This document shows, piece after piece, positions 2,064 to 40,398 of a stretch of 64,000 bases of DNA. Below the pieces are notes generated by a model that searched no databases, was not told the DNA's origin, and saw nothing but the letters and a program-made list of their open reading frames with translations. The translations under genes were made by a program, and so were the position numbers. Location of the stretch: the sequence record NC_028829.1; one strand, written 5' to 3'. Numbering within the stretch: the first letter of the stretch is position 1; each line of letters starts with the position of its first letter.

Positions 2064-2939
2064 TTAAGCACCAATTCGTTCTAACGTTGTTTGACTCAAT
2101 TTCGAATCACTTTGGGCTTCAAGAGAACTAACATCACTCCAAACGGTGATCTCATTTCCATTGATTACCCAGATCTTACCAGAAATCATTGCTATACGTT
2201 GCTCATCATCGTAGAAAAGCTCGTCTTCAGGTTCATAATACCACTCTAACGTGTAAAATGATTTATACCAAGCAACATCATCATTGATGCTACCTGCCGA
2301 AAGTTCAACAATACCAGCTTCGATGTTTAACGAGTGACCGCCACGAAGATACCAAATACCATCACCACCCGTTACTTTAACAATAGCAGCGTCGTTGATT
2401 GTAGGTAAATCGAGCAATTCAGTTCCCATTTCTGTATCATATCCAGTCGGGTTATCAGTGTGAACAGGCTTTGGGTCTTCAATAGGAACGATTCTTTCCA
2501 TCACGAATGACGCACCTTCAGATTCATTTGATACTCTCAATTTGAAACCTAAATCTTTGGCAAATCGTTCAGCCATTCTTTTGTATAATCGAGTACGCTT
2601 ACGGGAATCAGAACGATTTGTGTCATCAAATGCTGCAAATGTGATTCGATTTACGATGTTGTTTTGCATCACGTGCTTAATTTCAGAAATAACCGTGGCG
2701 AAAACAGTCATCGCGTCTTTAGAATCACCTTTTGCTAGGCTGTAATTGTAAGACATTGCACCCGCTGGCTTATGCATAAAATCGACACCTAGAGCTTTGC
2801 GATCTTCTTCATAATACAGACCAATCATATACTCAGCGCCGTCTATTTCGAAGTAACTCTGATTACCACGTCGTGCTGTTATGGGTGCAGCGCGGTTAAA
2901 CGCTTCTGTTAGCTCGTTTTGATATTCGCTAAATTTCAT
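2064..2939 (-). CDS. Putative capsid-internal protein, shared-domain family, paralog 1
   Basis: N-terminus MKFSEYQNELTE resembles the T4 IP capsid-targeting sequence; shares a ~110 aa domain with 2941, 3865, 12076 and 39511. Confidence 0.65.
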   Translation of the reverse strand: MKFSEYQNELTEAFNRAAPITARRGNQSYFEIDGAEYMIGLYYEEDRKALGVDFMHKPAGAMSYNYSLAKGDSKDAMTVFATVISEIKHVMQNNIVNRITFAAFDDTNRSDSRKRTRLYKRMAERFAKDLGFKLRVSNESEGASFVMERIVPIEDPKPVHTDNPTGYDTEMGTELLDLPTINDAAIVKVTGGDGIWYLRGGHSLNIEAGIVELSAGSINDDVAWYKSFYTLEWYYEPEDELFYDDEQRIAMISGKIWVINGNEITVWSDVSSLEAQSDSKLSQTTLERIGA

Positions 2940-2940
2940 T

Positions 2941-3861
2941 TTAAGATTCCATTATTTCTGGGTTTAACCACGGCGCATCGAATGCATTCACATATTTGGT
3001 AAACGCTGCATCGTCGGTGTATATTTTTAGACTTGTTTGACTAGTCAAGACGATATAGAAGTTCTTGAATGCACCAACCAGATATGTTCTATCTTCTTCA
3101 GGACCCTCACCATAGTCGAAAATTGGGTGCTGTAGTGCTGCTAACCATCCCTCTCGGTCAGACATTTCATACACAACGCGATTTACACGTAACCTAGCTG
3201 CAATTTCGTCAGCCGCTTTTACAACTGCACGACCTTGCCCTAGAACACCACTAATCATCGAACCATCTTCAACTTCAAACGCTCTTACAAATGCATATGC
3301 ATTGGCGTGAGATAAATTAACTTCAACATGGTCGCTATGTTCTTCAAACCCGACTGGACGACGTGCTCGACGTGAAAAGTCATCTACACGTTGTTGATAA
3401 CCCACATCATACACAATGAATTCACGACCTACGTTTCTGTAATCATACTGAGGGAATTCTCTAAGTTTCGCCTTTGTCATGATCTTATACAGTCTGAGAC
3501 GTTTATCTGCATCACGCTGATCAGCGTCATTGAACGCGCTATATGTTATTTGAGCAGGTGAATTGTCTCTAACAAAACTGAAAATCGCATCGACAACCGT
3601 TGATAATACGACTCGTGCTGTTTTATCATCTTTCTTAGTTAGATTATAACCACTACCATCAAGAGCTTTGAACGACACATCAGCCTTCATAGACTTCATC
3701 CCGTTCGGTTCACGTATAATGCCTTTCTGAATGTCTATTTCATAATAAACACCATCAACTTGAAACTCATACACGTTTAAATTTGGTAACTCACGGACGA
3801 GATTATATTTCGCTGGTCGATCTAACGACTCGTTGAGTCTTTGATATTCGCTAAATTTCAT
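2941..3861 (-). CDS. Putative capsid-internal protein, shared-domain family, paralog 2
   Basis: MKFSEYQRLNE leader; shared domain; C-terminal GQGRAVVKAADEIAARL resembles GNAT motif A. Confidence 0.65.
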   Translation of the reverse strand: MKFSEYQRLNESLDRPAKYNLVRELPNLNVYEFQVDGVYYEIDIQKGIIREPNGMKSMKADVSFKALDGSGYNLTKKDDKTARVVLSTVVDAIFSFVRDNSPAQITYSAFNDADQRDADKRLRLYKIMTKAKLREFPQYDYRNVGREFIVYDVGYQQRVDDFSRRARRPVGFEEHSDHVEVNLSHANAYAFVRAFEVEDGSMISGVLGQGRAVVKAADEIAARLRVNRVVYEMSDREGWLAALQHPIFDYGEGPEEDRTYLVGAFKNFYIVLTSQTSLKIYTDDAAFTKYVNAFDAPWLNPEIMES

Positions 3862-3864
3862 TTT

Positions 3865-4314
3865 CTACCTTTTATCAAGTCTTTCAAGTGAAATAGAACC
3901 CATGTCATACACAACCTTAAACCCAAGTTCATCAGCAAATCGTTTTGCAATACGTTTGTATACACTAAGTCTCTTACGATAATCATCCGCGTTCGAATCG
4001 CTAAATGCGTTGAAATGTATATAATTTACATCTTTGCTACGCATTAATTCTTCAATTTCAGATATAACAGTTGCAAAAACTGTAATCGCGTCTCTAGCAT
4101 CGCCTTTCGCGAGATTATAGCTCCATGTTAGTGATTCTCTGGACATATACATAAACTCAACATTTATAGATTTATCGTATTCTTCATATGCGAGTTCGAC
4201 GATGTAACGTTTGTCACCGACGTTAAAAAAGCTCTTATTTCCACGACGTGCTGTGATCTGTGCTGGTCGGTCAAATGCTTCTGTTAGCTCGTTTTGATAT
4301 TCGCTAAATTTCAT
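3865..4314 (-). CDS. Putative capsid-internal protein, shared-domain family, paralog 3 (single domain)
   Basis: MKFSEYQNELTE leader; consists only of the shared domain. Confidence 0.65.
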   Translation of the reverse strand: MKFSEYQNELTEAFDRPAQITARRGNKSFFNVGDKRYIVELAYEEYDKSINVEFMYMSRESLTWSYNLAKGDARDAITVFATVISEIEELMRSKDVNYIHFNAFSDSNADDYRKRLSVYKRIAKRFADELGFKVVYDMGSISLERLDKR

Positions 4315-4604
4315 TCTAAAAATTCCCCGTCGGGTATCGTGTCTTTGTCGATATTACCATTCAATGGTAGATCGTCGTCAAGACCGACATCTATTGATTT
4401 TAAATGTATTTCTAAGTCGTCGATTGATTGTTCAGTATAGAGGTACTTGCTTCTGTAATCGAAAAATGAGTAGCAATCTTCAGTGTATTCTACTTTCAAA
4501 ATCGTTTCATGACCTGCATGAACATATACTACGGGGTCGCCGAATGCGCTAATGTCCGTATAACTCATCTTCGTGTTTTTCAATAATGCAATTGCTTCTC
4601 TCAT
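4311..4604 (-). CDS. Hypothetical acidic protein
   Basis: ORF coupled to its neighbours. Confidence 0.6.
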   Translation of the reverse strand: MREAIALLKNTKMSYTDISAFGDPVVYVHAGHETILKVEYTEDCYSFFDYRSKYLYTEQSIDDLEIHLKSIDVGLDDDLPLNGNIDKDTIPDGEFLE

Positions 4605-4607
4605 AGA

Positions 4608-4892
4608 TTAACCTATAAAATTGTTTAATGGGCTGCTCAATCTATCAAGTTCTTCTAATATTACATCACCATGACACGCTTTAGGCTTACAATGACAGCC
4701 GAGAATCTTTCCTTTTAGTTGCATAAACTGCTTTTTAAATTCGTCGTCTTGTAATTGAATGCGTAACCACTCGCGATAAAGCTCAATAACTTCGCTTCGA
4801 GTACCGTCAATCCCTGATTTAAATGGGTTCCCAAACGGGGTGCCGCGACCAATGTACACATCAAAAGAATGATGAGCAATGTTAACTATCAT
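4608..4892 (-). CDS. DUF4326-like protein
   Basis: DVYIGRG..FGNPF and GKILGCHCKPKACHGDV motifs. Confidence 0.8.
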   Translation of the reverse strand: MIVNIAHHSFDVYIGRGTPFGNPFKSGIDGTRSEVIELYREWLRIQLQDDEFKKQFMQLKGKILGCHCKPKACHGDVILEELDRLSSPLNNFIG

Positions 4893-5187
4893 TATTTAGC
4901 ACCACTCTAAACCCAACACCGTGAATGACATTAACACAATCAACAAGACTACCGACAATCGGCACTGCTTTAACTTCAGCACGCTCGTAACCTGCGTATC
5001 GTACAAGCTGAAGAACAACCTTTTCATCACAATCTTTGTACATCGTGTAAGAACCGACTAAGAAGATGTCATTGTCATCGGCTATATTGTTGATGATCTC
5101 TCTTCGAGCGTATCTAGCTGCTTGCGTGCGCATATAACGCTCGAAATCACCATTATCGTTTTTCATTCTATTGATTTGTCGTCTCAT
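4882..5187 (-). CDS. Hypothetical protein (start MRRQIN)
   Basis: GAGGTTATTATG RBS and start. Confidence 0.6.
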   Translation of the reverse strand: MRRQINRMKNDNGDFERYMRTQAARYARREIINNIADDNDIFLVGSYTMYKDCDEKVVLQLVRYAGYERAEVKAVPIVGSLVDCVNVIHGVGFRVVLNNDS

Positions 5188-5216
5188 AATAACCTCAAAA
5201 AGCGCCATAAAGGCGC

Positions 5217-5396
5217 TTACTGTTCTGAATATCTAACACCTTTGAGAAATGCCTCAAGGCAATATTCATTATACGATTCGTAAACAACTTGACCGTTGTC
5301 TTTTATCTGCCAGAGTGATTGATTGTGTTCGTCAATTTCTTCGTTCAGAATGAACCCTTGACGTTCAACCATATCTCGTATTTCATGCTTTCTCAT
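5217..5396 (-). CDS. 59-aa hypothetical protein missed by the ORF track
   Basis: GAGGTTATTATG start, MRKHEIRDMVERQGF...LKGVRYSEQ; same RBS/start string as at 5187. Confidence 0.65.
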   Translation of the reverse strand: MRKHEIRDMVERQGFILNEEIDEHNQSLWQIKDNGQVVYESYNEYCLEAFLKGVRYSEQ

Positions 5397-5440
5397 AATA
5401 ACCTCGTTTTAGAGTGGCGACAATCGCCGCCACTAAATCA

Positions 5441-6817
5441 TTAAAGTACGCGCCCACCGCAATGTTCGCCCTTATCAATCTTAGAGCGTACGTACGGAAC
5501 ACGCTCTTCGCTCAAATCTTTCCAGTATTGATCTGTGTTCGGTGTTGAGTTATGACCGTAGCCGTAGTTATGACCGATTTCGTGTAAGAATACGCGAGTG
5601 TTGTGGTCGTAGTTTGCAAGATCGTACATCTTCGACTCAGACTTGGTGTTTGCCGCCCATGCGAAAATCGCAAAGGTTGTGTGTTCGTCGTATGACGGTG
5701 CAACACCGTAAATTGAAGTGACGCCACCTGAATAACCAGGTGCAGGTAAGTAACCTTCATCGCCTGTCATGATCATGTTCGCACGGCACGACTCGAAGTT
5801 GTTATTGAACCCTGCATATGCTTTCATCGACGCGCCGATCAATGCGTTTTCACGCTGCATCTTCAAAATCTCAATTGCACGCACTGAACTGTATTCATAC
5901 AGTGGAATACGACCTTCCAAGTGAGGGAAGTTTCTCAGGTCATCAGTCTGCGGTGAGTAAGTCTGATATAGACCAGAACTGTTACCAGTCAGAATCGGTT
6001 CAATTAAGCCTAGTTTGTAACCAACTTGTACTGAGTTCGAGTTCACTTGTTTTTGCCATGTTTCCCACCACTTCGGGTCTGCCATGTGGAAGTATGATAG
6101 ATTACCATCACCACCCATCCCGGGGATTAATGTCGCGTTCACCATCAAGTACGGACGGTCAAACGTCTTATTCGCTTGATCAATCGATGTCTTGATGCTT
6201 GATAGATCTTCAGTTGTGTGTAACCAGTTCAACGCTTTAATCCAGAAGCCTGCCAGATCACCACCGTAGTTCATGTCGTTAACTGTGTAACATACACGTT
6301 TACCGAGCTGATAACGACAGCTCTCGCGGCGTAAGTTTGCCCAACCCACATCAAGCGAGCCGTTTACATCAAACTTGCTTGAGTCTGCATTCATGCGAAG
6401 CGTGTATTCAAAGCCGTTATCAAAACATGCGCTACCTGATACAGAACATGCCCACTTCAATGGTGCCATAGCAAGTGTACTAAGAGCACGCATATCATCA
6501 CTTGGTGACATTGTACGCATGTCTGTTGAATCTTTCCAGAACCCGTAACCGTTACTGTCCATCGAAATGTAAGTGCTATTGACGGTCTGACTGATTTCAC
6601 CGGTTTTCTTATACTCAGCGTCAGCTTCTTGCATCGCGCTGTTTAACCAGGTACGTAACACTGAGTTGTGATAACCGTTCGTCATATGAGGGAACGTGAA
6701 CTCAGTTGTGAAAGGACTCGGTGTTTCGACACCTTCAGCCGGTAGTCCCGTGAATGTAGCCGCTGTCGTTGACGCAGTAGAACATAACAATGCTAATGAA
6801 AGCCAAAGTTTTTTCAT
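5441..6817 (-). CDS. Secreted metzincin-type zinc metallopeptidase
   Basis: Sec signal peptide MKKLWLSLALLCSTASTTAA; HEIGHNYGYGH fits HExxHxxGxxH. Confidence 0.7.
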   Translation of the reverse strand: MKKLWLSLALLCSTASTTAATFTGLPAEGVETPSPFTTEFTFPHMTNGYHNSVLRTWLNSAMQEADAEYKKTGEISQTVNSTYISMDSNGYGFWKDSTDMRTMSPSDDMRALSTLAMAPLKWACSVSGSACFDNGFEYTLRMNADSSKFDVNGSLDVGWANLRRESCRYQLGKRVCYTVNDMNYGGDLAGFWIKALNWLHTTEDLSSIKTSIDQANKTFDRPYLMVNATLIPGMGGDGNLSYFHMADPKWWETWQKQVNSNSVQVGYKLGLIEPILTGNSSGLYQTYSPQTDDLRNFPHLEGRIPLYEYSSVRAIEILKMQRENALIGASMKAYAGFNNNFESCRANMIMTGDEGYLPAPGYSGGVTSIYGVAPSYDEHTTFAIFAWAANTKSESKMYDLANYDHNTRVFLHEIGHNYGYGHNSTPNTDQYWKDLSEERVPYVRSKIDKGEHCGGRVL

Positions 6818-6892
6818 TTTATACCTATATTTTTAAGTTTTATTTTTATCTGTACAACCTAACCAGACGTGAATTGCAGTACATCGCTGCAA

Positions 6893-6940
6893 TGTGAAAC
6901 TAGTATAGCATCATGTCGTTGATATTAAACTAGTTTCACA
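6893..6940 (-). promoter_or_regulatory. Promoter enclosed by a perfect 12-bp inverted repeat
   Basis: TGTGAAACTAGT (6893..6904) and ACTAGTTTCACA (6929..6940) bracket GTTTAA-17 bp-TATACT on the minus strand. Confidence 0.6.
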
Positions 6941-6946
6941 ATCTTT

Positions 6947-8894
6947 TTAAATTCGTTTACCCCATTCAGAGAAGTCACGACCAGTCCAAATGAACTCGCG
7001 GTTGGTCAACTCTTCGATAGCTTTTTGAGTTGGTTCGAATGTAAATACGTCACCGATATATTCATAGCCGTACTTCGCTTTTGCTGCAATTTCTCGCATT
7101 TCAGCACCTTTTTTCAGCACTTCAGCTTCGCTTTTCGCGATGATGTAACCATCTGGTCGAGTGCCCCAACCATGCTCAACTTCAGTTACAAGTGCACCGT
7201 AACAGACAATCTTTGTTTCAAAACTCATGATAAACCTCTTACTTTGATGTTTTCATACACAGGCGCGACTTTTTCAAACACGACTGATTTAATCGTTGGT
7301 TGATTGTTGTCGATGTTAATCGCATTGATGAACGCAACTATACCGTCAATCGTGTTGAATTCCATTGATTCGAACCCAATCACATAACGACATTTCACTA
7401 GACGCCATTTGCCTTGCTTTTCAAGTGCAATGTAGTTCGATTGGCATGCTTTAGACAACCCCATACCCGATAGATCATAATCTTCGTCTCTCAACGTAGT
7501 ATCAGCTACGATTGCAGTGCGTGGGTTTTGATAATCAACATATAATACAATTTGTTGCATTAAATTTCTCTCATTTTAGAAATGTTTTGCCAGAATTTCG
7601 TTTGCTCGATCTTACATATGATAAACAGAATAAACATAACAATTGACACTAGTAGTGTACCGATAAACCCATATAACATGACCATAATCATGGGTATATT
7701 GTATGTTCGTTCGAATATTATATGCAGACCCATGAAAATCGCGATGATGTTTGAAATTACAAACGTGATAATGAACATAAGAAATAAAAATTCGCCCATG
7801 AGATTAACCCTCGTACTTGTATGTGTAATCTGGTGTTGGTCGAATGAAATCACGACCTTGACGTTGACCTACTAACCAAATTTCTTGAGCACAAGACTCG
7901 CAGTAATACGCTCTCATTGCAACGTTATACGAGCTTGCACCGGGCTTTTGACACTGAGTTACGTTACAGTCGCCGCCTTTCTTACCTTTACGAACATTGC
8001 GTTTAGCAAGGTCAATCATTGCTTCATGACGCTCACGAGAACCTAGACGTTCAATGCGCTCACGTTCATGAATGCGATCCATGATTTCTGCTTGCTTCTT
8101 GGCAGTTTCGTGCATCTTTGACCACTCTTTATCATAGTCGCGTGGCTTGTTTTTCTTTACTTTACGCAATTTGCCGTTGATTACTTGATATGCCATGATT
8201 AAGCTCCGTATGCTTCAATTAGTTGTTGGCGTTTTGCTTGGCGACGTTTCTCTTCTTTCGCTCGCTTCTTAGCAAGAATATCGTTGATTCGAGAACTCAC
8301 GAGATTTGAAATTGCACTGCAAAGTGCTTTCTCTTCGTTATTGGTAAACACGTTTGCAGGCGTCGCGAGACGCATCAATTCGCCAGTATAGCGAAAATCT
8401 TGATACTTCACAACGAATTTCACATCAGTATCACGATCAATTAGCACAATTGAATCATTATTCTCACTAACACACATTTCATTGTTGACGTACTTTGCAA
8501 CGTGAAAACGCTTCGGTTTATTCAGCATCTTGTCGATGATTGCAAGGGTCGGCTCTTCAACACCATAGTCGTAATCAAGATACGTCTTAGTCACGTAATT
8601 TGCGTATTCAGCTTTGCGCTTTATAATTTCTTTCGCTACGCTCGACCAAGTACCTTCGATTTTGTCACAATCATCACGAACATCATGAGACCAATAAGAA
8701 CGTCCGTACTCGGATGCATGTCGCTTACTCACGAACATAACAAATCGTAGTTTGCGTAGATGTGTGTCAGTCAGATAACCGAGAAGTGGTTTACCATTTG
8801 AACCTTTAATTTTAAAGCCGTCTAGATTCACAGACGGCTTTTGAAGCTCATCATGGAAGATGTCGTACACATATTTGCGAGCTGCATTAGTCAT
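6947..8894 (-). other. Early operon of five hypothetical ORFs (8199..8894, 7804..8196, 7560..7853 membrane, 7225..7560, 6947..7228)
   Basis: Translationally coupled ORFs downstream of the early promoter near 8926..8954; 7804..8196 has CxxxC and CxxC motifs. Confidence 0.65.
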
Positions 8895-8925
8895 AGTGTT
8901 CTCTCTTTCGTTTCGATGCGATAGA

Positions 8926-8954
8926 TATTAACCTAAATAAGTAATACAGTCAAC
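8926..8954. promoter_or_regulatory. Overlapping divergent promoters: early (-) and candidate late (+)
   Basis: Minus strand TTGACT-17 bp-TAATAT; plus strand CCTAAATA at 8932..8939 inside its spacer. Confidence 0.55.
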
Positions 8955-8971
8955 CGAATTCGAGAAAAAAG

Positions 8972-10027: not shown

Positions 10028-10049
10028 AAAGGGGCTTTCGCCCCTTTTT
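10027..10049. terminator. Bidirectional terminator between convergent genes
   Basis: AAAAGGGGC-TTTC-GCCCCTTTTT. Confidence 0.9.
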
Positions 10050-12001: not shown

Positions 12002-12030
12002 ATTATTCTCTTTTCGTTTTCGATACACAC

Positions 12031-12070
12031 ATGATACAAAAAAGGGCTGACATCTGTCAACCCTTTTTTT
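12031..12070 (-). promoter_or_regulatory. Early promoter fused with a terminator hairpin (PeSL-like)
   Basis: TTGACA-18 bp-TATCAT; the -35 box lies in the stem GGGTTGAC...GTCAGCCC, which is followed by T6. Confidence 0.8.
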
Positions 12071-12075
12071 AAATA

Positions 12076-13527
12076 TTATTCTTCGTCTTCGTCGTCTTTG
12101 TACTCAGATACATCAACGCCGTTTTCTTCAGCAAGCTCAATAAGTGCTTCATCAAATGACGGACCGAAGTTACCATTTATAGCGTATTCAAACACTTCTT
12201 CTTGATATGGATCTGAGTTATTCATCAAGAACTCAGCAGCTTCGCGACCCTCTAACCCCAGTACGTTAAATACCGCACCAATTGCAGATTCGCGAACATC
12301 TTCGTCATGGTCTGCTAGAAGTTCATCAACTCGATAACCTTGCTCGGCTACGTATTGGCGTTCTTCGTAATCATCTGTATCATCGACCATTCTATCCCAG
12401 ATATCTTCTGCCATATCACGACCGAATTCACTTTCGTAGCGTTTCGCATATGTGATACGTGTATCTGCGTCGTCGTTCTCGAAAGACCATTCCCATGCCG
12501 CTTCGCGCACGTCCTCGTCCGAGTCAAGAACAAGATCCCAGATAGCAAAACCATTTTCAGCAGCTTGCTTACGATGTTCCCCTTCATCAGATGTTGCAAG
12601 TTTCTCACCCATTTCGTAATCAGAGGCAATAACTGCATTACGAACGTCTTCGTCATCATGGAAAATCAGCTCTTCGTGCATCAGACCCCAACTAGCAATA
12701 CGAACTAGAGTTTGCCAATCTGCGTGTTCAATGATTTCATCTTCACGACCTTCATTGATCCATGCTTCGATTTGGTATTGATCTGCTTCATCGACGTAAT
12801 CTTCAAGAGACGGACCGCCACCGAATGCAGTGTCGTAGCTGCTAGGACGTTCGTGTTCATTGGTAAGAGTAAACGAAACTGAACCGCTCATACTCATCAA
12901 CGCTTGGTTAACGTCGTTGTCGCTCATTGAAAGAATGCTGCGCGTCACGTTCTTACGAACAGAACGGAAATCGTTTGCACCACCTGCTAGACGTGCAAGC
13001 CAGCGGTCGCTAATCTCAGTCGAATAGCCATATTCTTTACCGAAAGTCAGTGACAGTGCGTAGTACAGCATTGGACGGGAAATCAAGTCTTTCAATAGCT
13101 TTTTCTTACTTTCTTCGTCTAAGCGAGTTGCTTCGCGTCGATTGTTATTCAGTGCGTAGTACTCATGATTTGCTGGTAGCTCGTACGCTGCGCTGAAGTC
13201 ATATTCATACGGCTTCATGCCCATTTCTTCTTCATACGTCTCGGTGAACTCACGTAGAGTCGTCAATACACCAGAGAATACCGCAGCCGCAGAGTGTCCC
13301 GCTTTACCAGTCTGAGCATAACCACCAGAGTTCTGGAATGTGATTGAGAAATAACCAGGGTTGCTTTCGTCTACGCTAACCGAGAATCCTTCCCCCGCTG
13401 CGTTGAATCGCGCTGAAGTCTCGCCCGTCCCGTTCTCATGACCCCAATCCCAATCAATGTCGATATTCGCACGATCAGAAATCTCATCAAGGCGAACTTC
13501 TTGATAAAATTCGTTAAATTGTTTCAT
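12076..13527 (-). CDS. Putative capsid-internal protein: shared domain plus acidic HEAT/LRV-like repeats
   Basis: MKQFNEFYQEVRLDE leader; repeats LIFHDDEDVRNAV, LVLDSDEDVREAA, LLADHDEDVRESA; TCTAAATA box at 13556..13563. Confidence 0.65.
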   Translation of the reverse strand: MKQFNEFYQEVRLDEISDRANIDIDWDWGHENGTGETSARFNAAGEGFSVSVDESNPGYFSITFQNSGGYAQTGKAGHSAAAVFSGVLTTLREFTETYEEEMGMKPYEYDFSAAYELPANHEYYALNNNRREATRLDEESKKKLLKDLISRPMLYYALSLTFGKEYGYSTEISDRWLARLAGGANDFRSVRKNVTRSILSMSDNDVNQALMSMSGSVSFTLTNEHERPSSYDTAFGGGPSLEDYVDEADQYQIEAWINEGREDEIIEHADWQTLVRIASWGLMHEELIFHDDEDVRNAVIASDYEMGEKLATSDEGEHRKQAAENGFAIWDLVLDSDEDVREAAWEWSFENDDADTRITYAKRYESEFGRDMAEDIWDRMVDDTDDYEERQYVAEQGYRVDELLADHDEDVRESAIGAVFNVLGLEGREAAEFLMNNSDPYQEEVFEYAINGNFGPSFDEALIELAEENGVDVSEYKDDEDEE

Positions 13528-13575
13528 TTAATTAACCTTTTAATGTTGTTTCTTCTATTTAGACAAAACAAAAAA

Positions 13576-13601
13576 ATCCCGTCGGTTAAGACGGGATTTA
13601 A
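13576..13601 (-). terminator. Intrinsic terminator
   Basis: AATCCCGTC...GACGGGATT stem with a T run on the minus strand. Confidence 0.8.
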
Positions 13602-14036: not shown

Positions 14037-14184
14037 ACGCAGCTAGACATGCATCAGCATAGTTTGTTGCAGTTGATGTTTCTTTACAGTCATTTGCGTT
14101 CGCAGTATGACACCATGCTTTCAACCACACGTCGCGTCGTTGCATTTCATGTTCAACTTCGTGTGCGTAAAGTAATTTAGCCAT
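13993..14184 (-). CDS. Hypothetical protein (start MAKLLYAHEV)
   Basis: GGA RBS before the ATG at 14184. Confidence 0.6.
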   Translation of the reverse strand: MAKLLYAHEVEHEMQRRDVWLKAWCHTANANDCKETSTATNYADACLAAFDRRFENIKVVSDA

Positions 14185-14407
14185 TTGTTTTTCCTTTTCC
14201 AGAATTTGTGTATAAACCGAATATCGCTGCACCTGCACCGACAATAGTCGATACAAATGCAGATTGTGTTGCTGAAGGGTCAGGCAGTGCCATGAACCAT
14301 ATTGCTGTAGTATAAAGCAAGTAGCAATACATTGCAACTAAAATTCGAGGGACAATGCGCCACGAGTCGAAAGCTTCAGCAAGTTTTTTATTTGTTTCAA
14401 AACTCAT
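14177..14407 (-). CDS. Two-TM membrane protein (WRIVPR family, holin-like)
   Basis: Two hydrophobic segments, basic C-terminus. Confidence 0.55.
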   Translation of the reverse strand: MSFETNKKLAEAFDSWRIVPRILVAMYCYLLYTTAIWFMALPDPSATQSAFVSTIVGAGAAIFGLYTNSGKGKTNG

Positions 14408-14574: not shown

Positions 14575-14577
14575 ACA

Positions 14578-15641: not shown

Positions 15642-15651
15642 ATTTTTACCT

Positions 15652-16569: not shown

Positions 16570-16577
16570 ATTTGTCC

Positions 16578-32167: not shown

Positions 32168-32204
32168 AATGTACTCTCTTTGTTTTCGTATCTCGTTTCG
32201 ATAG

Positions 32205-32244
32205 AGCTATAATACGCAAAAAGGGTTGCCGAAGCAACCCTTTT
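32205..32244 (-). promoter_or_regulatory. PeSL-like promoter/terminator, identical to 17147..17186
   Basis: 40-bp perfect direct repeat; TTGCTT-17 bp-TATTAT. Confidence 0.85.
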
Positions 32245-32261
32245 ATTCAAATAATTTCAAA

Positions 32262-32909: not shown

Positions 32910-32916
32910 TGCACAC

Positions 32917-34362
32917 CTACTTAATATCAATATCAATCAGATAGTTCGTTGCGTTAACGCTGAACTCAATCAAAGTACCGTCAACCGAAACGTCAACGCC
33001 GTTTTCAACGATGTTTTCCATCATCGAGTAAAGTGTTTCTTGATCAAGCATCGCTTCAGAGAAAGATTGACCAACCTTGAATGAACTGAACTGATCATTT
33101 GCAAGAGCACGAATCAGTGAATCAACATCATCAACCATTTCAGTCACTGGACGTAGACTAGACATGATATTCGGGTGGAATACACGATTCGACTCAGCCA
33201 TTGTTGAAAATGCAGTCACTGTTTGACGCTCAGGGGTAACACAACCATCGAACGATAGCATAGCTTCAGCAAATGCTTTACAGTCAAAACGTTTCACGCC
33301 TTTACGTTCCATCATCGCAATCATATCAAGAAGCGGGTAACCTGCTTCAGATAATTCAACGCGATATTCTTCACACACACGACCTGCACGCATAGCATGT
33401 TCCGCGTTTGTTAGAACAATACTTGTGTTGTTGTGTTTCAGCTTCCAACCGTTGTCAAAATACGCTTCTTTCACATCAACAAGATTTTGCCATGCAGTCG
33501 ATGTCAGTGGCGCAGTCGCGATTTCTTTCGTGAAAACGTTCTGAGCATGTTCAATCATGGTGATGTTCTGTTTCAGATCGTATGCTTTGAAGCCTTCTAG
33601 CATCGGCAAGCCAGTATCGTCTTTACGTTCACGAGCGTATGATACGTCTTTCGCTTCTTTTACAATGAACAAGTCCATGATTTTACGGTTCAGTGCAGCC
33701 AATGTCAGTGCATTTTTACCAGACTTGATTTTCATCTCAGTGATGTCAGACAGTTCAGCTTTTGAGTCAACCGATTCAACAGTCACATAAACGTCACCAA
33801 GCTCGATGTTTTCAGCCATTGACAGTACTTCGGAGGCTGAATTGTCGTCGATTGATAGCGATTCAATTACAAGCTTATCAGAATCAGCAAGATTAATTTT
33901 CATTTCACGCATAGGGAAAACAACGTGAATGTCATTTTTCTTATAACCAAGCTTAGTCGCTTCAGCAACAACTTGATCTAAGTAACCGCCTTTAATCACG
34001 ATGCTAGGAAGACGCGCTTCAGTACACATGATCATAGACTTAACTTGCTGTAGCTCATGTGCTGGCAATGATAAGAATTCGTTTTCCATAAGCAAGTTGA
34101 TTGTGCTTACGTTCTCGCTCAGATTGATATCGAAGTTTTTCTCATCGACGTTTTTATCTTCAGCAAGTTTAGTACTCATGATAGATTTAAGCTCATTTGC
34201 CTTTTCCATCATGCCGATAGTTGTTTCAACGCCTTTGCCTTTGCTGAACTCAGTAGATGCAGTGCCTAGCTCAACAATAACTTGACCAAACTTAGGGTAG
34301 ATTTTACCACCCTGAGTTTGACGGCGATTTTCACTCAGAAATGAGTCAAAGTTACCTAACAT
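32917..34362 (-). CDS. Putative capsid-internal protein, possibly a degenerate P-loop kinase
   Basis: MLGNFDSFLSE leader; IYPKFGQVIV followed by a non-canonical Gly loop. Confidence 0.5.
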   Translation of the reverse strand: MLGNFDSFLSENRRQTQGGKIYPKFGQVIVELGTASTEFSKGKGVETTIGMMEKANELKSIMSTKLAEDKNVDEKNFDINLSENVSTINLLMENEFLSLPAHELQQVKSMIMCTEARLPSIVIKGGYLDQVVAEATKLGYKKNDIHVVFPMREMKINLADSDKLVIESLSIDDNSASEVLSMAENIELGDVYVTVESVDSKAELSDITEMKIKSGKNALTLAALNRKIMDLFIVKEAKDVSYARERKDDTGLPMLEGFKAYDLKQNITMIEHAQNVFTKEIATAPLTSTAWQNLVDVKEAYFDNGWKLKHNNTSIVLTNAEHAMRAGRVCEEYRVELSEAGYPLLDMIAMMERKGVKRFDCKAFAEAMLSFDGCVTPERQTVTAFSTMAESNRVFHPNIMSSLRPVTEMVDDVDSLIRALANDQFSSFKVGQSFSEAMLDQETLYSMMENIVENGVDVSVDGTLIEFSVNATNYLIDIDIK

Positions 34363-34371
34363 GTTAATTCC

Positions 34372-34884
34372 TTAATCGTAAAATTTCTGTAAGTTAAGTG
34401 GTTCTTTCTGTTCATCTGGTTGAGCTTTAGCAGTCTTGCCAGATTCGTAAGAATTGACACGTTCTAACATCTGTTGAAGAAAATCGAAATCAGTTTCTTC
34501 ACCATCAATCGAGTAGTTAGACGAATCACATAAGAATACTTTATATTTAATCGCTGTATCTTTTCTTTCTTTCTTAATACGTTGTACAAACGCATTGAAG
34601 CAAATACGAGTGATATAAGCGTGTGGGTTGTTATACTTGTCAGTGTCGAAGTTCTTGATATAGCGCAAGCAATGTTCGATTGCGTCACCAATCATCTCTT
34701 CTTTCCAGGTTGCAGTATACCCACTAAAATTGTAACGGCGAGATAAATTCTCGCTGATCTTCATGATACTGATTGCTACCACGTCAGGGACGGGAATTGC
34801 AGCATCAGGGTGTTTCTTCATTTCGCTTTTCCATTCGCATAAAGATGCGTACAGGGCTTTATTATCTACATAATGATTTTTCAT
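34372..34884 (-). CDS. 55: Late sigma factor gp55
   Basis: HYVDNK.LY, FSGYT.TWKEEMIGDAIE, NPHAYITRICFNAFVQRIKKE. Confidence 0.97.
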   Translation of the reverse strand: MKNHYVDNKALYASLCEWKSEMKKHPDAAIPVPDVVAISIMKISENLSRRYNFSGYTATWKEEMIGDAIEHCLRYIKNFDTDKYNNPHAYITRICFNAFVQRIKKERKDTAIKYKVFLCDSSNYSIDGEETDFDFLQQMLERVNSYESGKTAKAQPDEQKEPLNLQKFYD

Positions 34885-34892
34885 GTCACACC

Positions 34893-35792
34893 TTATACCG
34901 TTACTGCGTGAGTGTATGACAGCTTAGAACTGTTCGCAAGAACACCAAGATTATCCCAATCGATTTCAACTGCACCCGTTTGATTATCTTCTAATGGTGC
35001 AACGGTCAATGCGTATCGAGCAATCACACCGTAAATTGGGTGGAATGATTTTGAGTCTTGTGTTTTATATTGATATGCAATACCAGCGTCTGTTGCTTTG
35101 TCAAAGTTGTATGGGCTGAATACTAAACTTGAGATTTCATAATCACCAAGTTCTTTCTTAACACCAATTGTTACGTAGTCAGTCGTTGCATACTTGTCAT
35201 GAACTAGATATAACCCAGAGTCACATTTATACATGCTAGTATCACCAATCTGTGTAGCCATACCAGTGCCCGTCAATAGACCAAATGCTTCACCACCTGC
35301 TACGATATATGTACCTGTACAACCCGTTGACTTTTCAATCTCAGCAGCAGATGCATGGACGAACGAGTATAATTCTCGACCTTTATCAAAACGGTTAGTA
35401 ATAGCAGATAGCGTAATTGCACTACCAACAGTTGAAATACTGTTTAGTGCATCGATGATATTAGTGTTGATGTCATCTGCGATTTGATCAGCAATAGAAT
35501 CTGTGATAATCGATTCATTGACACCAAGTGCTTGCATGTCTTGAATTGTTTCAAGTGAGATTTCAGTTTTTAGCTTTGATGATTGAACTTGTGCATACCA
35601 GCGATCAAGTCTAAAACCATGTGGCAGCCACCCACTCGCGTCATCAGCTTCAGCTACAGATTTGAAACCGAACGCAGTCGCAACCGGTTGAGTTGTTGGC
35701 TGTTCTGAAACGATTTGCGTAAATATTAACGGGTATAGTCGTTTTTGAACAGAAACAATGTCTGGTAAACCGTTACTATTAGATACAGTCAT
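34893..35792 (-). CDS. Truncated gp23/gp24-like capsid protein paralog
   Basis: KRLYPLIFTQIVSEQPTTQPVATAFG and FSPY...FHPIYGVIARYAL resemble T4 MCP motifs; TATAAATA at 35849..35856. Confidence 0.7.
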   Translation of the reverse strand: MTVSNSNGLPDIVSVQKRLYPLIFTQIVSEQPTTQPVATAFGFKSVAEADDASGWLPHGFRLDRWYAQVQSSKLKTEISLETIQDMQALGVNESIITDSIADQIADDINTNIIDALNSISTVGSAITLSAITNRFDKGRELYSFVHASAAEIEKSTGCTGTYIVAGGEAFGLLTGTGMATQIGDTSMYKCDSGLYLVHDKYATTDYVTIGVKKELGDYEISSLVFSPYNFDKATDAGIAYQYKTQDSKSFHPIYGVIARYALTVAPLEDNQTGAVEIDWDNLGVLANSSKLSYTHAVTV

Positions 35793-35847
35793 TGTATGAT
35801 TCCTTTAATTTATTGCCGCATTTCAGCGGAGAGAATGTTATTTTCTT

Positions 35848-36087
35848 TTATTTATATGTCTGGTTATCAACCCATTGCTTGAGTTCTGGAAGATGACCTA
35901 TGTATGTATCACCATGCATAGCAAGAGGCACGCGAATGTTGCGCACCCCACCAAGTTTCTCATGCAATTTATCGATATCAGATTGAGACTGTAACTCTAT
36001 TACAGTGTACGGGACGTTTTTGAACTTACAGAGGGAAATTGCGTGACGACAGCCGTCACAGTTGGGAATTGTGTATATCGTTATCAT
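35848..36087 (-). CDS. Glutaredoxin (NrdC/NrdH-like)
   Basis: CDGC active site, VP, IG. Confidence 0.9.
   Translation of the reverse strand: MITIYTIPNCDGCRHAISLCKFKNVPYTVIELQSQSDIDKLHEKLGGVRNIRVPLAMHGDTYIGHLPELKQWVDNQTYK
35849..35856 (-). promoter_or_regulatory. Consensus T4 late promoter
   Basis: TATAAATA upstream of the capsid-like gene. Confidence 0.8.
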
Positions 36088-36141
36088 TTCTTCACCTCGA
36101 CCTATATTATACGTCTGCCAAGGTGGTTATTAAACAAATCT

Positions 36142-36186
36142 TACTAATACTTCTAATATTACTAAAAGCACTAATACTACTAAGAT
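36142..36186. repeat. Five tandem 9-bp imperfect repeats (iteron-like)
   Basis: TACTAATAC TTCTAATAT TACTAAAAG CACTAATAC TACTAAGAT, intergenic. Confidence 0.85.
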
Positions 36187-36211
36187 GAGACGGAATTTTT
36201 CCGCTCAAACC

Positions 36212-36237
36212 AAAAAAAAAAGCCCCTTTCGGGGCTA
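36212..36237 (-). terminator. Intrinsic terminator
   Basis: AGCCCC-GAAA-GGGGCT then T10 on the minus strand. Confidence 0.85.
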
Positions 36238-36254
36238 TAAAGAGAACAACAATG

Positions 36255-37082
36255 TTATAAACCGTGAGATTTTTTGAAAGTGTCTAGACGCTTTTCGATT
36301 GTGTGAGCTTCTAGTTCAATAATGATGTACCAATCTTTGTATTTACCACGCTGTTCAAATGACACTGACTTACAACCTTTGTGAGTAGTATTCATTACGA
36401 TTTCTGCGATTGCGTCACGAGCAGCTTGACCACGTGCGTTTACTTTCTTAGCAGGCTTAGGCGCTTCAGCTTTCTTTTCAGCTTTCGGTGCAGGTGCTGC
36501 TACAGGTTCAACTGCTTTAGTATTTTCAGCTTTCTTAGCTTCGTGATCTGCTTTGATAGCGTTGAATGTTGATGTTGCAACGCAACGAAGTTGACCTTCA
36601 GTTTCAGCTTTACGACCTTTCACGTATAGAGACTTGATGTGTACTGGTTGAAAACGCTTAGTCAAACGATCTGTTTTCTGAACTACTTCAATTTCACCTT
36701 GAGCGTTTTCGAAGAAAACAACGTACTTGCTATCTACAGCATCAGGGTTAGATACAGTTGAGCAACGCTTTGCATCGCCACCTAGTTGACGGTGTACACG
36801 CTTCCAGATAGCACCGTGACCACGTTCGTTGTAATCAGTGTAAGCAATCGCGTGAGCCATTTCGTGAGTGATTGTGATGATTTGCTCTTCTTTAGTACGA
36901 GCGTTCAAGAATTTTTCAGAAAGACGTAGTGTTTTAGTACGGTAGTTACAATCACCTAGTGCAGCTTTACGTTTTGAAAATTCGAATGACCAACCTTCTG
37001 CAATCAGATCGCGCTTCATCAAGTTGTTACCAGACATAAGGTCGATTGCGATAGCTTTCATTTCTGCTTTAGTGATTGTCAT
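36255..37082 (-). CDS. SprT-like zincin protein with a Lys/Ala/Pro-rich linker
   Basis: LGDCNY, THEMAH, GHGAIWK. Confidence 0.8.
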   Translation of the reverse strand: MTITKAEMKAIAIDLMSGNNLMKRDLIAEGWSFEFSKRKAALGDCNYRTKTLRLSEKFLNARTKEEQIITITHEMAHAIAYTDYNERGHGAIWKRVHRQLGGDAKRCSTVSNPDAVDSKYVVFFENAQGEIEVVQKTDRLTKRFQPVHIKSLYVKGRKAETEGQLRCVATSTFNAIKADHEAKKAENTKAVEPVAAPAPKAEKKAEAPKPAKKVNARGQAARDAIAEIVMNTTHKGCKSVSFEQRGKYKDWYIIIELEAHTIEKRLDTFKKSHGL

Positions 37083-37127
37083 AATGTTCTCTCTTTAAGT
37101 AGTTCGTATCTCGTCTTGATGTGTTTA

Positions 37128-37159
37128 TTATCGGGGATTGACGTGTTATTGTCAATCCC
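37128..37159 (-). promoter_or_regulatory. Early promoter with the -35 box inside a hairpin
   Basis: TTGACA-17 bp-GATAAT; stem GGGATTGAC/GTCAATCCC. Confidence 0.7.
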
Positions 37160-37190
37160 TAAAACTACTTTTTTCGTGAATTATTTCAAA

Positions 37191-37694
37191 TTATTCACTA
37201 ATTGACTTCACTTTTTCGATAATTTCAACGATTTCTTTCGCTGAACGATTCGAAAATATGATTGTCGATTTTTTGCGTCGCTGTACTTCTTTATGCTTTG
37301 CTGGGTTTAGATGTCCAAGTTCGCGATCAAGTTCCTTATTTGATAATACACTAGAACGAATCATTACGCGATGACTATCAGGCAGTCCAGTAGTCACGTA
37401 TACATTTAGACCGTGCTCTTCAGAGTCCATACCAGGCTGAGATTCTCGAATCTCCCAAAAATCTGAAGACTCGCTTTGTAGTTCTGCAAGTAGTTCTTCA
37501 GCAGTTGCTTTAGGCTGTGCTTCAGCGCGTACTTTACGTGCTTTCTTCGTCTTAGCAGCTTTCATTGCTTTCTGACGAAGGTCTGTTAAATAATGACGAC
37601 GACCTTTCTCATCAACAGCTTGAAAACCGTTTGAGTCTACTGTCATGTTGAAGTAAGCAGCAAGTTGTTCGTTAGTCAGTGATTGTACATTCAT
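37191..37694 (-). CDS. Hypothetical early protein
   Basis: Follows the promoter TTGCAC-17 bp-TAATAT and the conserved leader. Confidence 0.65.
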   Translation of the reverse strand: MNVQSLTNEQLAAYFNMTVDSNGFQAVDEKGRRHYLTDLRQKAMKAAKTKKARKVRAEAQPKATAEELLAELQSESSDFWEIRESQPGMDSEEHGLNVYVTTGLPDSHRVMIRSSVLSNKELDRELGHLNPAKHKEVQRRKKSTIIFSNRSAKEIVEIIEKVKSISE

Positions 37695-37852
37695 AATTAT
37701 TCTCTCTGTTCGTTAATTCGTTTCGATGAAGCTATATTAGGTCTATATTGTTTTTCGTGCAACCTTTTTCTTACAAAAAGTTTAAAATAATTTCAACGGG
37801 TGTTATGAGCAATCATAAATACACATATATTTCTAAAGGGTGAGTCTATAAA

Positions 37853-39481
37853 ATGATTGGATTTCAACAATTAAATGAAAACATGAGCGCAACGTACGAC
37901 TATTATCCGGCTCGCTCGACCAAAGAAAACAAATTCTTTGTGATCGACATGAAAGGCGAAGCCAGAGACATCGTTGTTTCGTTCACAACTAAAACAAAAT
38001 CAGATATCGGAAATCGCGGTAAACGTGCGTGGTTCTGTACTGTATCAGCAATGCGCGGCAAAAAAGGCGGTGTTACTATTCGTGAAATGGGAGATGAACA
38101 AAAGCTTCAACAAACTATTGTTAAAGTGGTTCAAGATTTCATGATCAAACGTCGTGCGAATGTCGTTTCAATGCGTGTGCAGAAACTAGGTACGGGTAAG
38201 ATGTTCGACTTGCGCGTTAAAACGTTGTTTAAAAAGCTACGTTACGGCTGTGATACAACTAAGATCATTGGCGTGGGTGGTGAAGAAATTTCGCAAGATT
38301 ACAGCTTCTTTATTGTAACCAAACCAGGGTATAATGCCGATAAGCTATTCGAAGCATCTGAAGAAACAATTAACGATATTGCGTTAAAAATGTCACTCGA
38401 AACTGATATTTCAAGCAAGAAAACGATTATCGTAACTGCCGATGCTGCGTATGACGACTATGAAGATGACGTACTAGGTAAATGGGTAGAAGAAAACCCC
38501 GCTGCACGTGTTCCAAATGATGTTCTTCAAATGCCTCAATATGAAGCGCGTGTAAGTTCGTCTGTTCGTTCTCAATTGAATGAAAGCAATGAACATGTTC
38601 TTGCTAATGCTGCGAAAGGTTTAATTGATATGAGTTTGAATCTTGAAACTGTGGCAGTTTCATTGAATTCATATATCGCCGAATCGAAGAAGCCTCAAAG
38701 CGTTCTGAATAGTATCATGGAATCTCGCTCACGTGCTCATGCAAGTCAGTATGAACGTCTTTCTTTGCAACTTATGCAGGAAGATTCATTTGCGGGTCTA
38801 TCGTCACTTACACAAGCTGCTATTGCTAGATACTCCGCGACTCGTTTTTCATGGAAGGTGAATGAAGAGTTATTACACGGAACGGGTGTTGATAAAGAAT
38901 CACAGATTGTCTCACGCATCGACCAAGCGTTTTCTGAAGCTGGTATGATTGCTGGTGGAATGACGTTATATCGTGGCTGTGAAATGTCAAGTAAACATGT
39001 GCGCTCTATTCTTGAATCTGGCTCGTTTGTTTCGACTGCGTTTATCTCAACGTCAATCGACCCTCTTGTTGCTTGTAAGTTCGTTGAATCAAGCTCTAAG
39101 AACATCATTGATTCAACTGCTAAGAATAGTAAATCAGATATGCGTTCTCTGCTTGAGTCAGATAAGAAAATGAATGTTGTATTCATCATAGAAGCGAGCG
39201 GCTTGCCTGTTTTAGCTTCAGGTAAACACGGTATGAAAGACTCAAAAGAGATTATCATCAACCGTAATACGATGTTTGAAGCTGACGTTGTTCAAATGTC
39301 TGAATACGACGCTGTAATTCGATTGAAAATCAAAGAAGATACGAAGCAAGGTGTATTGTCTGCTTTCAAAAAGCAAGAGCGTTTACACGAGCTTTCAGAA
39401 GTAGCCAATTTCATGCGTTCTGTTGATGTAGATATCGATGCAGATAGACTAACAAAAGAGCGTAGTCCTCTAACACCATGA
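37853..39481 (+). CDS. alt: Alt/Mod-like NAD:protein ADP-ribosyltransferase
   Basis: LYRG, FISTS and a catalytic E in DSKEIII; MIGFQQLNE leader; CATAAATA at 37814..37821. Confidence 0.75.
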   Translation: MIGFQQLNENMSATYDYYPARSTKENKFFVIDMKGEARDIVVSFTTKTKSDIGNRGKRAWFCTVSAMRGKKGGVTIREMGDEQKLQQTIVKVVQDFMIKRRANVVSMRVQKLGTGKMFDLRVKTLFKKLRYGCDTTKIIGVGGEEISQDYSFFIVTKPGYNADKLFEASEETINDIALKMSLETDISSKKTIIVTADAAYDDYEDDVLGKWVEENPAARVPNDVLQMPQYEARVSSSVRSQLNESNEHVLANAAKGLIDMSLNLETVAVSLNSYIAESKKPQSVLNSIMESRSRAHASQYERLSLQLMQEDSFAGLSSLTQAAIARYSATRFSWKVNEELLHGTGVDKESQIVSRIDQAFSEAGMIAGGMTLYRGCEMSSKHVRSILESGSFVSTAFISTSIDPLVACKFVESSSKNIIDSTAKNSKSDMRSLLESDKKMNVVFIIEASGLPVLASGKHGMKDSKEIIINRNTMFEADVVQMSEYDAVIRLKIKEDTKQGVLSAFKKQERLHELSEVANFMRSVDVDIDADRLTKERSPLTP

Positions 39482-39486
39482 TCGAA

Positions 39487-39512
39487 AAAGGGAGCAATTT
39501 GCTCCCTTTTTT
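39487..39512. terminator. Bidirectional terminator
   Basis: AAAAGGGAGCAA-T-TTGCTCCCTTTTT between convergent genes. Confidence 0.9.
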
Positions 39513-40398
39513 ATTCAACTCTAATAAGACTATGACCCCAAACTTCTTCAAAGTCGCTTACCTTTTCAACCATGTAAAGTGTGTTGTAGTCAAGAATCAG
39601 CATTTTACCATCTTCTAGAATCGCGCCCTTCTCTAGTAATTCAGCTTCTCCATCACCACCCCATGCAGGTTTAGCAATAATAGTACCTAGCAGACTTTCC
39701 CATATTTCAACCGTGTCTAAATTATCAAATTTATTACCATTGATTGATGCTTTAATTTGAACTGTTTTATCATTAACTCGTTTGATTGTAGCGAACCCAT
39801 TTGTCATACGAATCAATTCAAAATCACCAGGTCGTTCACACTCAAATAGCGTCGCCCATGTGAATGCGTTCACTCTAGGGAAATCAACATATGTGATCTC
39901 ATCTTCGACTTTAATACCATCATTTGGTAGTCGTCTAATTTCATTAGATGGGTTGTTGTTTTTTAATACAAACATACGCCCGTGCGTTTGTAAAGTATAG
40001 TCCATCTGCTTTGCGTATCGTTCAGCCATGCGCTTGTAAAGATTATAGCGTTTCTTTGCATCTCTGTCGTCATGGTCTGCAAATGCGCTGAATGTAATGT
40101 AATCTGGGTTTTCTCGTTTAGCCTTGTCAAACGTAGCTGCAAGCACCGTACTCATTACCATCAATGAATCTTTCGCGTTGCTCGATTTCTTTAATTCATA
40201 TGAATACTGACCATCTGGTCTTTTCCACATAAATGAAACGTCAATTATGCGTCCGCGTGCTTCATCTTTGCTAGTTATGATTGCTTTATACATAGTCCCG
40301 CCGATTTCAAAAAACGCTTCGTCGTCGGTCAGCCAGTCATAATTCGCTGCTCTATCAAACGCTTCAAATAGCGCGTCATATCCCTCGAATATAATCAT
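39511..40398 (-). CDS. Putative capsid-internal protein, shared-domain family, paralog 5
   Basis: LFE-AFDRAA leader; ITFSAFADHDDRDAKKRYNLYKRMAERYA; TATAAATA at 40422..40429. Confidence 0.7.
   Translation of the reverse strand: MIIFEGYDALFEAFDRAANYDWLTDDEAFFEIGGTMYKAIITSKDEARGRIIDVSFMWKRPDGQYSYELKKSSNAKDSLMVMSTVLAATFDKAKRENPDYITFSAFADHDDRDAKKRYNLYKRMAERYAKQMDYTLQTHGRMFVLKNNNPSNEIRRLPNDGIKVEDEITYVDFPRVNAFTWATLFECERPGDFELIRMTNGFATIKRVNDKTVQIKASINGNKFDNLDTVEIWESLLGTIIAKPAWGGDGEAELLEKGAILEDGKMLILDYNTLYMVEKVSDFEEVWGHSLIRVE

Follow-up and report, generated by a model that had tools for sequence, protein, structure and literature searches.

In this study, we analysed 64 kb of Vibrio phage ValKK3 (NC_028829.1, record 62001-126000), hereafter the window, and followed a protein domain that recurs in several of its genes. 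ValKK3 belongs to the genus Schizotequatrovirus and is a T4-type myovirus resembling KVP40. A first-pass annotation of this DNA had proposed a repeated domain of about 110 amino acids (aa), possibly with a GNAT-like fold, in five open reading frames (ORFs). All five ORFs are present on the minus strand and annotated as hypothetical proteins, and the repeated domain is borne out in each of them. The domain is longer than was claimed, about 135-145 aa, and in the window copies it follows directly after a leader of 9-15 residues. Because relatives of these proteins have been found inside phage particles, they are probably internal proteins that are injected with the DNA.

Genes carrying the repeated domain

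The simplest of the genes is ORF147 (3865..4314, minus strand; PHROG 27801), which encodes a single-domain protein of 149 aa. Its leader, MKFSEYQNELTE, occupies codons 1-12 (4279..4314, minus), and residues 13-149 form the domain (3868..4278, minus), which we call DUF6934-like for the reasons given below. ORF145 (2064..2939, minus; 291 aa; PHROG 6387) opens with the same leader MKFSEYQNELTE (2904..2939), followed by the domain at about 2499..2903 (minus; isoelectric point (pI) 9.5) and by an acidic C-terminal domain that is unrelated to the N-domain (2067..2498, minus; pI 4.1). ORF146 (2941..3861, minus; 306 aa) has the leader MKFSEYQRLNE (3829..3861), the domain at about 3412..3828 (minus) and an acidic C-terminal domain at 2944..3411. 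ORF203 (39511..40398, minus; 295 aa) lies between an Alt-like gene and the DNA ligase gene and is built in the same order, with the leader MIIFEGYDALFE (40363..40398), the domain at about 39964..40362 (minus) and an acidic C-terminal domain at 39514..39963. ORF163 (12076..13527, minus; 483 aa) carries the leader MKQFNEFYQEVRLDE (13483..13527), a diverged copy of the domain recognised by hhalign and a hidden Markov model (HMM) at 12940..13482 (minus), and very acidic repeats with HEAT matches at 12079..12939 (minus; pI 4.05).

In the alignment, the N-terminal ~140 residues of ORF147, ORF145, ORF146 and ORF203 share 31-55% pairwise identity and 25 invariant columns, and the consensus blocks reported earlier (VFATV, ITF.AF and KR..LYKR) are the most conserved blocks of the whole family. 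An HMM built from these four clear copies matched those four alone among the 645 six-frame ORFs of the window (E 4e-70 to 5e-58). It missed ORF163 among the same ORFs (E 5.6), a copy that broader profiles later resolved. A 124-sequence family profile from which ORF163 was absent found residues 12-175 of ORF163 with E 1.6e-9, and hhalign aligned the family to the N-terminus of the ORF163 family with 98% probability (E 1.9e-13, 137 columns), the match beginning after the leader. The ORF163 domain contains an insertion of ~29 residues between strand 5 and helix 4.

The Alt-like ADP-ribosyltransferase (ART) gene next to ORF203 (37853..39481, plus) begins with the leader MIGFQQLNE (37853..37879), and its ART domain lies at about 38801..39337 (plus; Pfam ADPrib_exo_Tox above its cut-off). 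The region after the leader (about 37880..38251, plus) is probably a sixth, strongly diverged copy of the domain, judging from the family HMM (E 6e-4), a collinear match to Pfam DUF6934 next to the ART domain (E 0.044) and hhalign against the family (82.6%, E 9.6e-6, 116 columns). The N-terminal region of T4-type Alt was also tried as a domain copy, but this was not supported (hhalign 1.9%, against 82.6% for the Vibrio Alt).

We also scanned ValKK3 beyond the window (record 1-50000 and 126001-176000) for further copies. A seventh was found in ORF276 (record 146811-147731, plus; 306 aa; PHROG 16075), where the domain is C-terminal (E 3e-39). The ORF276 domain is preceded by ...NLTE/AFDRP (here and below, the slash stands after the glutamate of the domain start) and keeps the T-G-R-G-N and S-R-x-x-L-Y motifs. 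The genes around it are annotated as 'prohead protease inhibitor', and the head gene cluster is close by.

Relationship to DUF6934

When 1.84 billion representative proteins were searched with the four-copy profile, 859 of them reached E<=1e-3. Many of these relatives are single-domain proteins of ~150 aa; in many others, which are up to 2,215 aa long, 2-5 copies of the domain abut. Pfam DUF6934 (PF22028) is matched at E<=0.01 by 84 of the 124 aligned domains, and the multi-copy relatives score about 59-163 bits against it, far above the cut-off. The four clear window copies and the Alt-like protein give collinear matches to DUF6934 below its gathering cut-off of 27 bits (15.3-17.9 bits for the window copies and 14.2 bits for Alt), and ORF163 gives no match. 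These scores of 14-18 bits against a cut-off of 27 indicate, at the level of sequence, that the window domain is a divergent branch of DUF6934.

The large relatives combine the domain with true GNATs, PolyA_pol, HD, NT5C, GGACT, Amidoligase_2, DUF192 and DUF5661. As a set of effectors, these partners resemble the repertoire of polyvalent or ejected proteins of phages. Giant metagenomic relatives also fuse DUF6934 arrays to a weakly matched ParB-like nuclease. Two genomic contexts of relatives were examined, and both look like those of large phages. The earlier suggestion that the window genes themselves encode polyvalent proteins did not stand: their products are 149-483 aa long with one or two domains, and the giants of 1,000-2,200 aa, with arrays and enzymes, are distant relatives only.

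Homologues retrieved with the family alignment were confined to close relatives from Vibrio phages, and NCBIfam and PADLOC gave nothing meaningful. In the library searched, as far as its texts were available, the only mention of DUF6934 was in a bacterial genome report.

Leader and domain start

The leader and the motif at the domain start, which are absent from the first-pass annotation, are the most informative feature of these proteins. The domain starts with the pattern [LIV]-x-E/[ALS]-[FL]-D. Its glutamate is invariant in 124/124 aligned sequences, a conservation matched by Tyr119 alone. Before it, L, I or V occupies position -2 in 113 of the 124 sequences (an aliphatic residue or Phe in 121), and T, N, D or S stands at position -1. 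After it come A, L or S, next F or L, next D or N, and finally any residue and P. In the tandem arrays the units abut and the motif opens every one of them, while the first units begin with leaders such as MRYNEIINE/LFN and MKLTNILLE/VFD.

The window proteins start with MKFSEYQNELTE/AF (ORF145 and ORF147), MKFSEYQRLNE/SL (ORF146), MIIFEGYDALFE/AF (ORF203), MKQFNEFYQEVRLDE/IS (ORF163) and MIGFQQLNE/NM (the Alt-like protein). The T4 capsid-targeting sequence (CTS), MKTYQEFIAE, is removed by a single cut; its residues 4 and 7 serve in targeting, and residues 8 and 10 govern processing. In T4, exchange of the Glu for Asp stops processing and leaves targeting intact. The window leaders are of the same type, with 9-15 residues, aromatic residues near positions 3-7 and an ending (L/I/V)-x-E. 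Similar sites occur in head proteins of ValKK3 itself, namely gp22 (MQIKEQLLE/AV), the prohead protease gp21 (ORF283; MELQLLIE/DW) and gp23 (...GLNE/AV).

In T4, gp21 cuts Alt at ITE-6 and LTE-619. The starts of T4-type Alt (MELITE/LFD) and of Alt from Aeromonas phage 31 (MLLTE/VFD) show the motif that opens each DUF6934-like unit, and in its letters the start motif is identical to the proven gp21 site of T4 Alt (ITE-6/LFD). The ValKK3 Alt-like protein also contains ...HELSE/VANF ~30 residues before its C-terminus (39400..39481, plus), which is possibly the counterpart of the C-terminal gp21 site LTE-619.

ORF166 (14177..14407, minus; 76 aa) starts with MSFETNKKLAE/AFD and was considered as a further candidate. 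It has two predicted transmembrane helices and no domain match, and the resemblance is probably a coincidence. In the searchable literature, which did not extend to the KVP40 genome paper (Miller et al. 2003), no link between KVP40-type phages and CTS-bearing proteins was found.

Presence in virions

The virion proteome of the related Schizotequatrovirus 6E351A has been determined by mass spectrometry (MS), with spectral counts from two replicates (PMC12028318, Tables S4 and S8). In these data VP6E351A_0154, the syntenic orthologue of ORF145/146 (PHROG 6387, beside dCMP deaminase), had 37/51 counts. VP6E351A_0094, the ORF203 orthologue between ligase and Alt, had 16/61; VP6E351A_0134 (QZI87349.1), the ORF163 orthologue, had 58/109; and VP6E351A_0018, the ORF276 orthologue, had a mean of 11.5. 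Alt of 6E351A reached 122/233. For comparison, the tail tube had 47/58 counts and the prohead protease 17/28 (PMC12028318). With 94 of about 430 coding sequences of 6E351A detected, the chance of finding 5/5 family members is ~5e-4.

Support also comes from the unrelated Pseudomonas jumbo phage PA5oct, for which 93 virion proteins were reported. Its gp135 is a single-domain member of the family (E 1e-31) with the N-terminus MHLFE/LFD and is annotated 'structural protein, ESI-MS/MS'. The gene lies amid the MS-confirmed 'structural' proteins gp133 and gp136, which lack the domain. Presence in mature particles was thus found through orthologues, for four families and Alt in 6E351A and for gp135 in PA5oct, and the earlier idea of delivery with the DNA fits this virion proteomics of relatives.

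Promoters and leader DNA

The exact T4-type late-promoter box TATAAATA has three matches in the 64 kb, each in a short intergenic spacer just upstream of an ATG on the same strand. One lies 24 nucleotides (nt) upstream of the ORF203 ATG (40422..40429, minus) and is preceded by a terminator hairpin (40442..40463; dG -18.3, z -3.2). The others lie upstream of the gp24 head-vertex gene (35849..35856, minus) and upstream of the homing endonuclease ORF234 (54369..54376, plus). These exact boxes fit functional T4-type late promoters in ValKK3, as far as sequence and position can tell.

Boxes with one mismatch stand at matching positions before ORF163 and Alt. That of ORF163, TCTAAATA (13556..13563, minus), is late-promoter-like, lies 29 nt upstream of the ATG and is preceded by a terminator-like hairpin (13574..13599). 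As 61 one-mismatch boxes were counted where 81 were expected, there is no enrichment and only their position is suggestive; we relied on exact boxes and positions.

The three genes of the ORF145-147 cluster have diverged strongly: their proteins are 27-51% identical and their third codon positions 26-39% identical. The first seven codons of ORF145, ORF146 and ORF147 are nevertheless identical at 21/21 nt. In the leader DNA (4279..4314, 2904..2939 and 3829..3861, minus), the first 21-22 nt are identical, and ORF145 and ORF147 agree over 38 nt, although synonymous sites outside this stretch are saturated. Identical leader DNA in these diverged tandem paralogues indicates gene conversion or a nucleotide-level constraint on the leader. 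In the T4 internal proteins (IPs), the CTS is likewise kept and the mature parts diverge. The number of copies also varies, and phage 6E35-1b has one gene at the ORF145-147 locus.

C-terminal domains

ORF145, ORF146 and ORF203 have second domains that form one homologous group (PHROG 6387). These domains are acidic (pI 4.1-4.9), with invariant G, N, G and W positions, and searches of Pfam and of PDB sequences gave no match for them. The motif VD(L/F)P..N, earlier noted as common to second domains, reflects real conservation of this family. On the other hand, the GNAT 'motif A' proposed for the second domain of ORF146 did not hold up, as this domain is unrelated to the first and gives no GNAT signal. 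We considered the second domain as another copy of the first (hhalign 0.2%) and as a GNAT (no Pfam GNAT match, no PDB sequence match, Atlas scores <=0.49), and rejected both.

The C-terminal 287 residues of ORF163 form HEAT-like repeats with a recurring D-E-D-V-R-E/N. They contain 81 Asp/Glu (28%), with a pI of 4.05, a composition reminiscent of DNA-mimic proteins. In the ValKK3 proteins, the N-domains are basic (pI 8-9.5) and the attached C-domains acidic (pI 4.1-4.9).

Predicted fold

The AlphaFold2 model of ORF147, made with a 124-row alignment, has a mean local confidence (pLDDT) of 88.2 and a global score (pTM) of 0.81; pLDDT is 59 for residues 1-10. The elements follow in the order helix 3-13, a meander of 4-5 strands, helix 73-91, strand 98-101, helix 109-130 and hairpin 132-145. 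Conserved polar positions of the family are T82, R115, Y119 and the TGxGD loop.

AlphaFold with Foldseek had been proposed as a check of the GNAT-like fold. The model is confident. No PDB structure reached E<=1e-3 in Foldseek, and the best matches, with a template modelling (TM) score of ~0.39, were a GNAT-like domain of M. tuberculosis ICL2 that binds acetyl-CoA, the DNase I-like subdomain of RNase E, and some Nat enzymes. In the Atlas, DUF6934 and DUF6169 clusters were nearest (TM 0.72-0.73) and GNAT clusters scored TM ~0.54. By VIA-align, ~44 of the top 50 PDB matches were acetyltransferase or GNAT-type chains. It is plausible from the model that the domain has a GNAT-like topology, chiefly in its C-terminal half, as a distant structural relationship. 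The idea of a GNAT-like fold is supported for the predicted topology of the strand-helix-strand-helix-hairpin C-terminal half, but membership of the GNAT family does not follow. None of the 124 family members matches the Pfam GNAT (Acetyltransf) models, and a sequence link between DUF6934 and the true GNAT domains that reside in the same giant proteins was rejected (hhalign 0.1%). A sequence search of the PDB gave no match for the first domain.

The ORF147 model is without the alpha1-alpha2 pair between strands 1 and 2. In place of the motif A loop Q/R-x-x-G-x-G/A, the clear window copies have AKGDARD, AKGDSKD, TKKDDKT or KKSSNAKD. In the wider family, the N-terminal end of the central helix, the place of GNAT motif A, carries T-G-x-G-D; both glycines of this loop are replaced in the four clear copies and kept only in ORF163 (TGKAGH) and ORF276.

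Discussion

We consider it fairly probable that these products are internal head proteins which are targeted by their leaders, processed by the prohead protease and ejected with the DNA, as functional counterparts of T4 IPI-III and Alt. The architecture would consist of a CTS-like leader, a gp21-type cleavage site after Glu and an alpha/beta DUF6934 domain of ~135 residues with GNAT-like topology. Most copies would add a variable C-terminal module, which is an acidic beta-rich domain, acidic HEAT-like repeats or an ADP-ribosyltransferase. The proteins would be made late; their leaders would attach them to the scaffolding core, and one trimming step by the prohead protease would follow. The trimmed proteins may then stay in the head with the DNA until they are ejected into the host, where they may act in host takeover or counter-defence. 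Cleavage, ejection and activity in the host are the steps that we infer.

Several points weigh against this reading. Cleavage at the motif in these proteins is deduced from the motif itself, and the invariant Glu, which sits at the end of the first predicted helix, could instead be structural or catalytic. The ORF145-147 cluster is without a convincing late promoter of its own. The full-length proteins are acidic (pI 4.2-5.9) and basic in their N-domains only, whereas the cited T4 papers call the T4 IPs basic. ORF147 is restricted to ValKK3, phi-Grn1 and phi-ST2, so that the 6E351A data cover no orthologue of it, and the N-terminal copy in Alt is supported at 82.6% hhalign probability only. 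The 6E351A particles were precipitated with polyethylene glycol (PEG) and without gradient purification, and some non-structural proteins were detected as well (spanins, GTP cyclohydrolase, and ligase at low counts; PMC12028318), so that carry-over is possible.

An alternative that we hold to be doubtful is that the domain is a packaging or adapter module rather than an effector. As an extended targeting domain, it would bind to scaffolding core or DNA and bring variable cargo domains into the head. It is the sole element common to proteins whose other domains differ (acidic, HEAT and ART here; PolyA_pol, HD, NT5C, GGACT, Amidoligase_2 and GNAT in relatives), its basic charge is opposite to that of the acidic cargo domains, and all carriers tested by MS were present in particles. 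However, a 10-residue CTS suffices for targeting in T4. Many members consist of the domain alone, and cargo-free arrays of 3-5 copies are not explained by a carrier role. Moreover, the domain of ORF276 is C-terminal, and the conserved polar T82, R115, Y119 and TGxGD loop suggest a binding site.

It is unlikely that the domain is an active GNAT-type acyl-CoA-dependent acetyltransferase, injected to modify host targets as AcrVA5 acetylates Cas12a. Its modelled strand-loop-helix-strand-helix-hairpin order equals that of the CoA-binding half of GNATs, the T-G-x-G-D of the family sits where GNATs carry Q/R-x-x-G-x-G/A, S-R-x-x-L-Y recalls motif B with its Tyr, and giant proteins of the family also contain true GNAT domains. 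Against this stand the missing sequence or profile link to GNAT, a Foldseek TM of only ~0.39, a model without the alpha1-alpha2 pair, and the loss of both T-G-x-G-D glycines in the four clear copies. More likely, the domain is a ligand- or partner-binding body, possibly a pseudo-enzyme. For the window copies we rank an active acetyltransferase least likely among a cofactor-binding body, an enzyme and a carrier.

That the start motif is purely structural and the products are ordinary non-virion early or middle proteins carried over into the preparations is quite improbable. In its favour, the particles were only PEG-precipitated and contained a few clearly non-structural proteins, the ORF145-147 cluster shows no late promoter and the motif lies within the first predicted helix. 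Against it, the counts match or exceed those of the tail tube and prohead protease, 5/5 family members were detected, there is independent MS support in PA5oct, the motif is that of the proven T4 Alt site, an exact late box precedes ORF203, and pLDDT is only 59 over residues 1-10.

Returning to internal head proteins, a wider proposal may be put forward tentatively, and we regard it as more doubtful than the role of the ValKK3 genes. DUF6934 could be a widespread, previously unrecognised fold of phage ejected proteins, in which arrays of 3-5 units are polyproteins cut by the prohead protease, inside the head, into ~16-kDa units. Batteries of counter-defence effectors derived from GNATs could be loaded and diversified in this manner, and the genes of ValKK3 would represent the system in unlinked form.

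KVP40-type vibriophages have a broad host range and are used in aquaculture biocontrol. No phage gene has yet been expressed when injected proteins act, and they are prime candidates for first-line counter-defence for this reason. If our reading is true, a role is assigned to seven 'hypothetical' genes, and DUF6934 gains a location, the head interior, and a testable processing signal. The rule of a leader plus [LIV]xE/[ALS][FL]D plus DUF6934 would then find injected proteins in hundreds of uncultured large phages, and it would point to a possible polyprotein route for effector loading.

Among known structures, the GNAT fold (RimI 3dns/5isv, EctA 6sk1, AcrVA5 6iuf and the ICL2 C-terminal domain 6edw) is a similar two-layer alpha/beta arrangement over ~100-107 residues, with a root mean square deviation of 3-3.9 A and a C-terminal half whose elements are ordered alike. 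It differs in that there is no sequence relationship, the window domain is without the alpha1-alpha2 pair and the window copies are without motif A. DUF6169 (PF19666) is named with DUF6934 among the closest known families.

The ejection or inner-body proteins of the giant phages phiKZ, 201phi2-1 and SPN3US are paralogous families of head-internal proteins with identical N-termini, cut after the Glu of a short motif by a gp21-related protease (PMC5694885). They are of other families, their propeptides are longer and their motif is A/S/G-x-E, and tandem arrays of the same domain are undescribed there.

The T4 internal proteins differ from those of ValKK3 in that the mature parts share no sequence similarity. 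The T4 bodies are small, basic and unrelated to each other, whereas one ~135-aa DUF6934 fold is shared here, several ValKK3 proteins are two-domain and acidic overall, and their processing and ejection are deduced. They are alike in the short aromatic N-terminal leader ending (L/I)-x-E and in having several divergent paralogues per genome, in which the leader is conserved while the bodies diverge. They are also alike in their presence in particles, here through orthologues, and as non-core genes whose content varies between related phages. Finally, the Alt-like protein of ValKK3 has an ART domain like T4 Alt, its leader ends in LNE and its orthologue is abundant in 6E351A particles; the start of T4-type Alt, MELITE/LFD, agrees with the motif that opens the DUF6934-like units.

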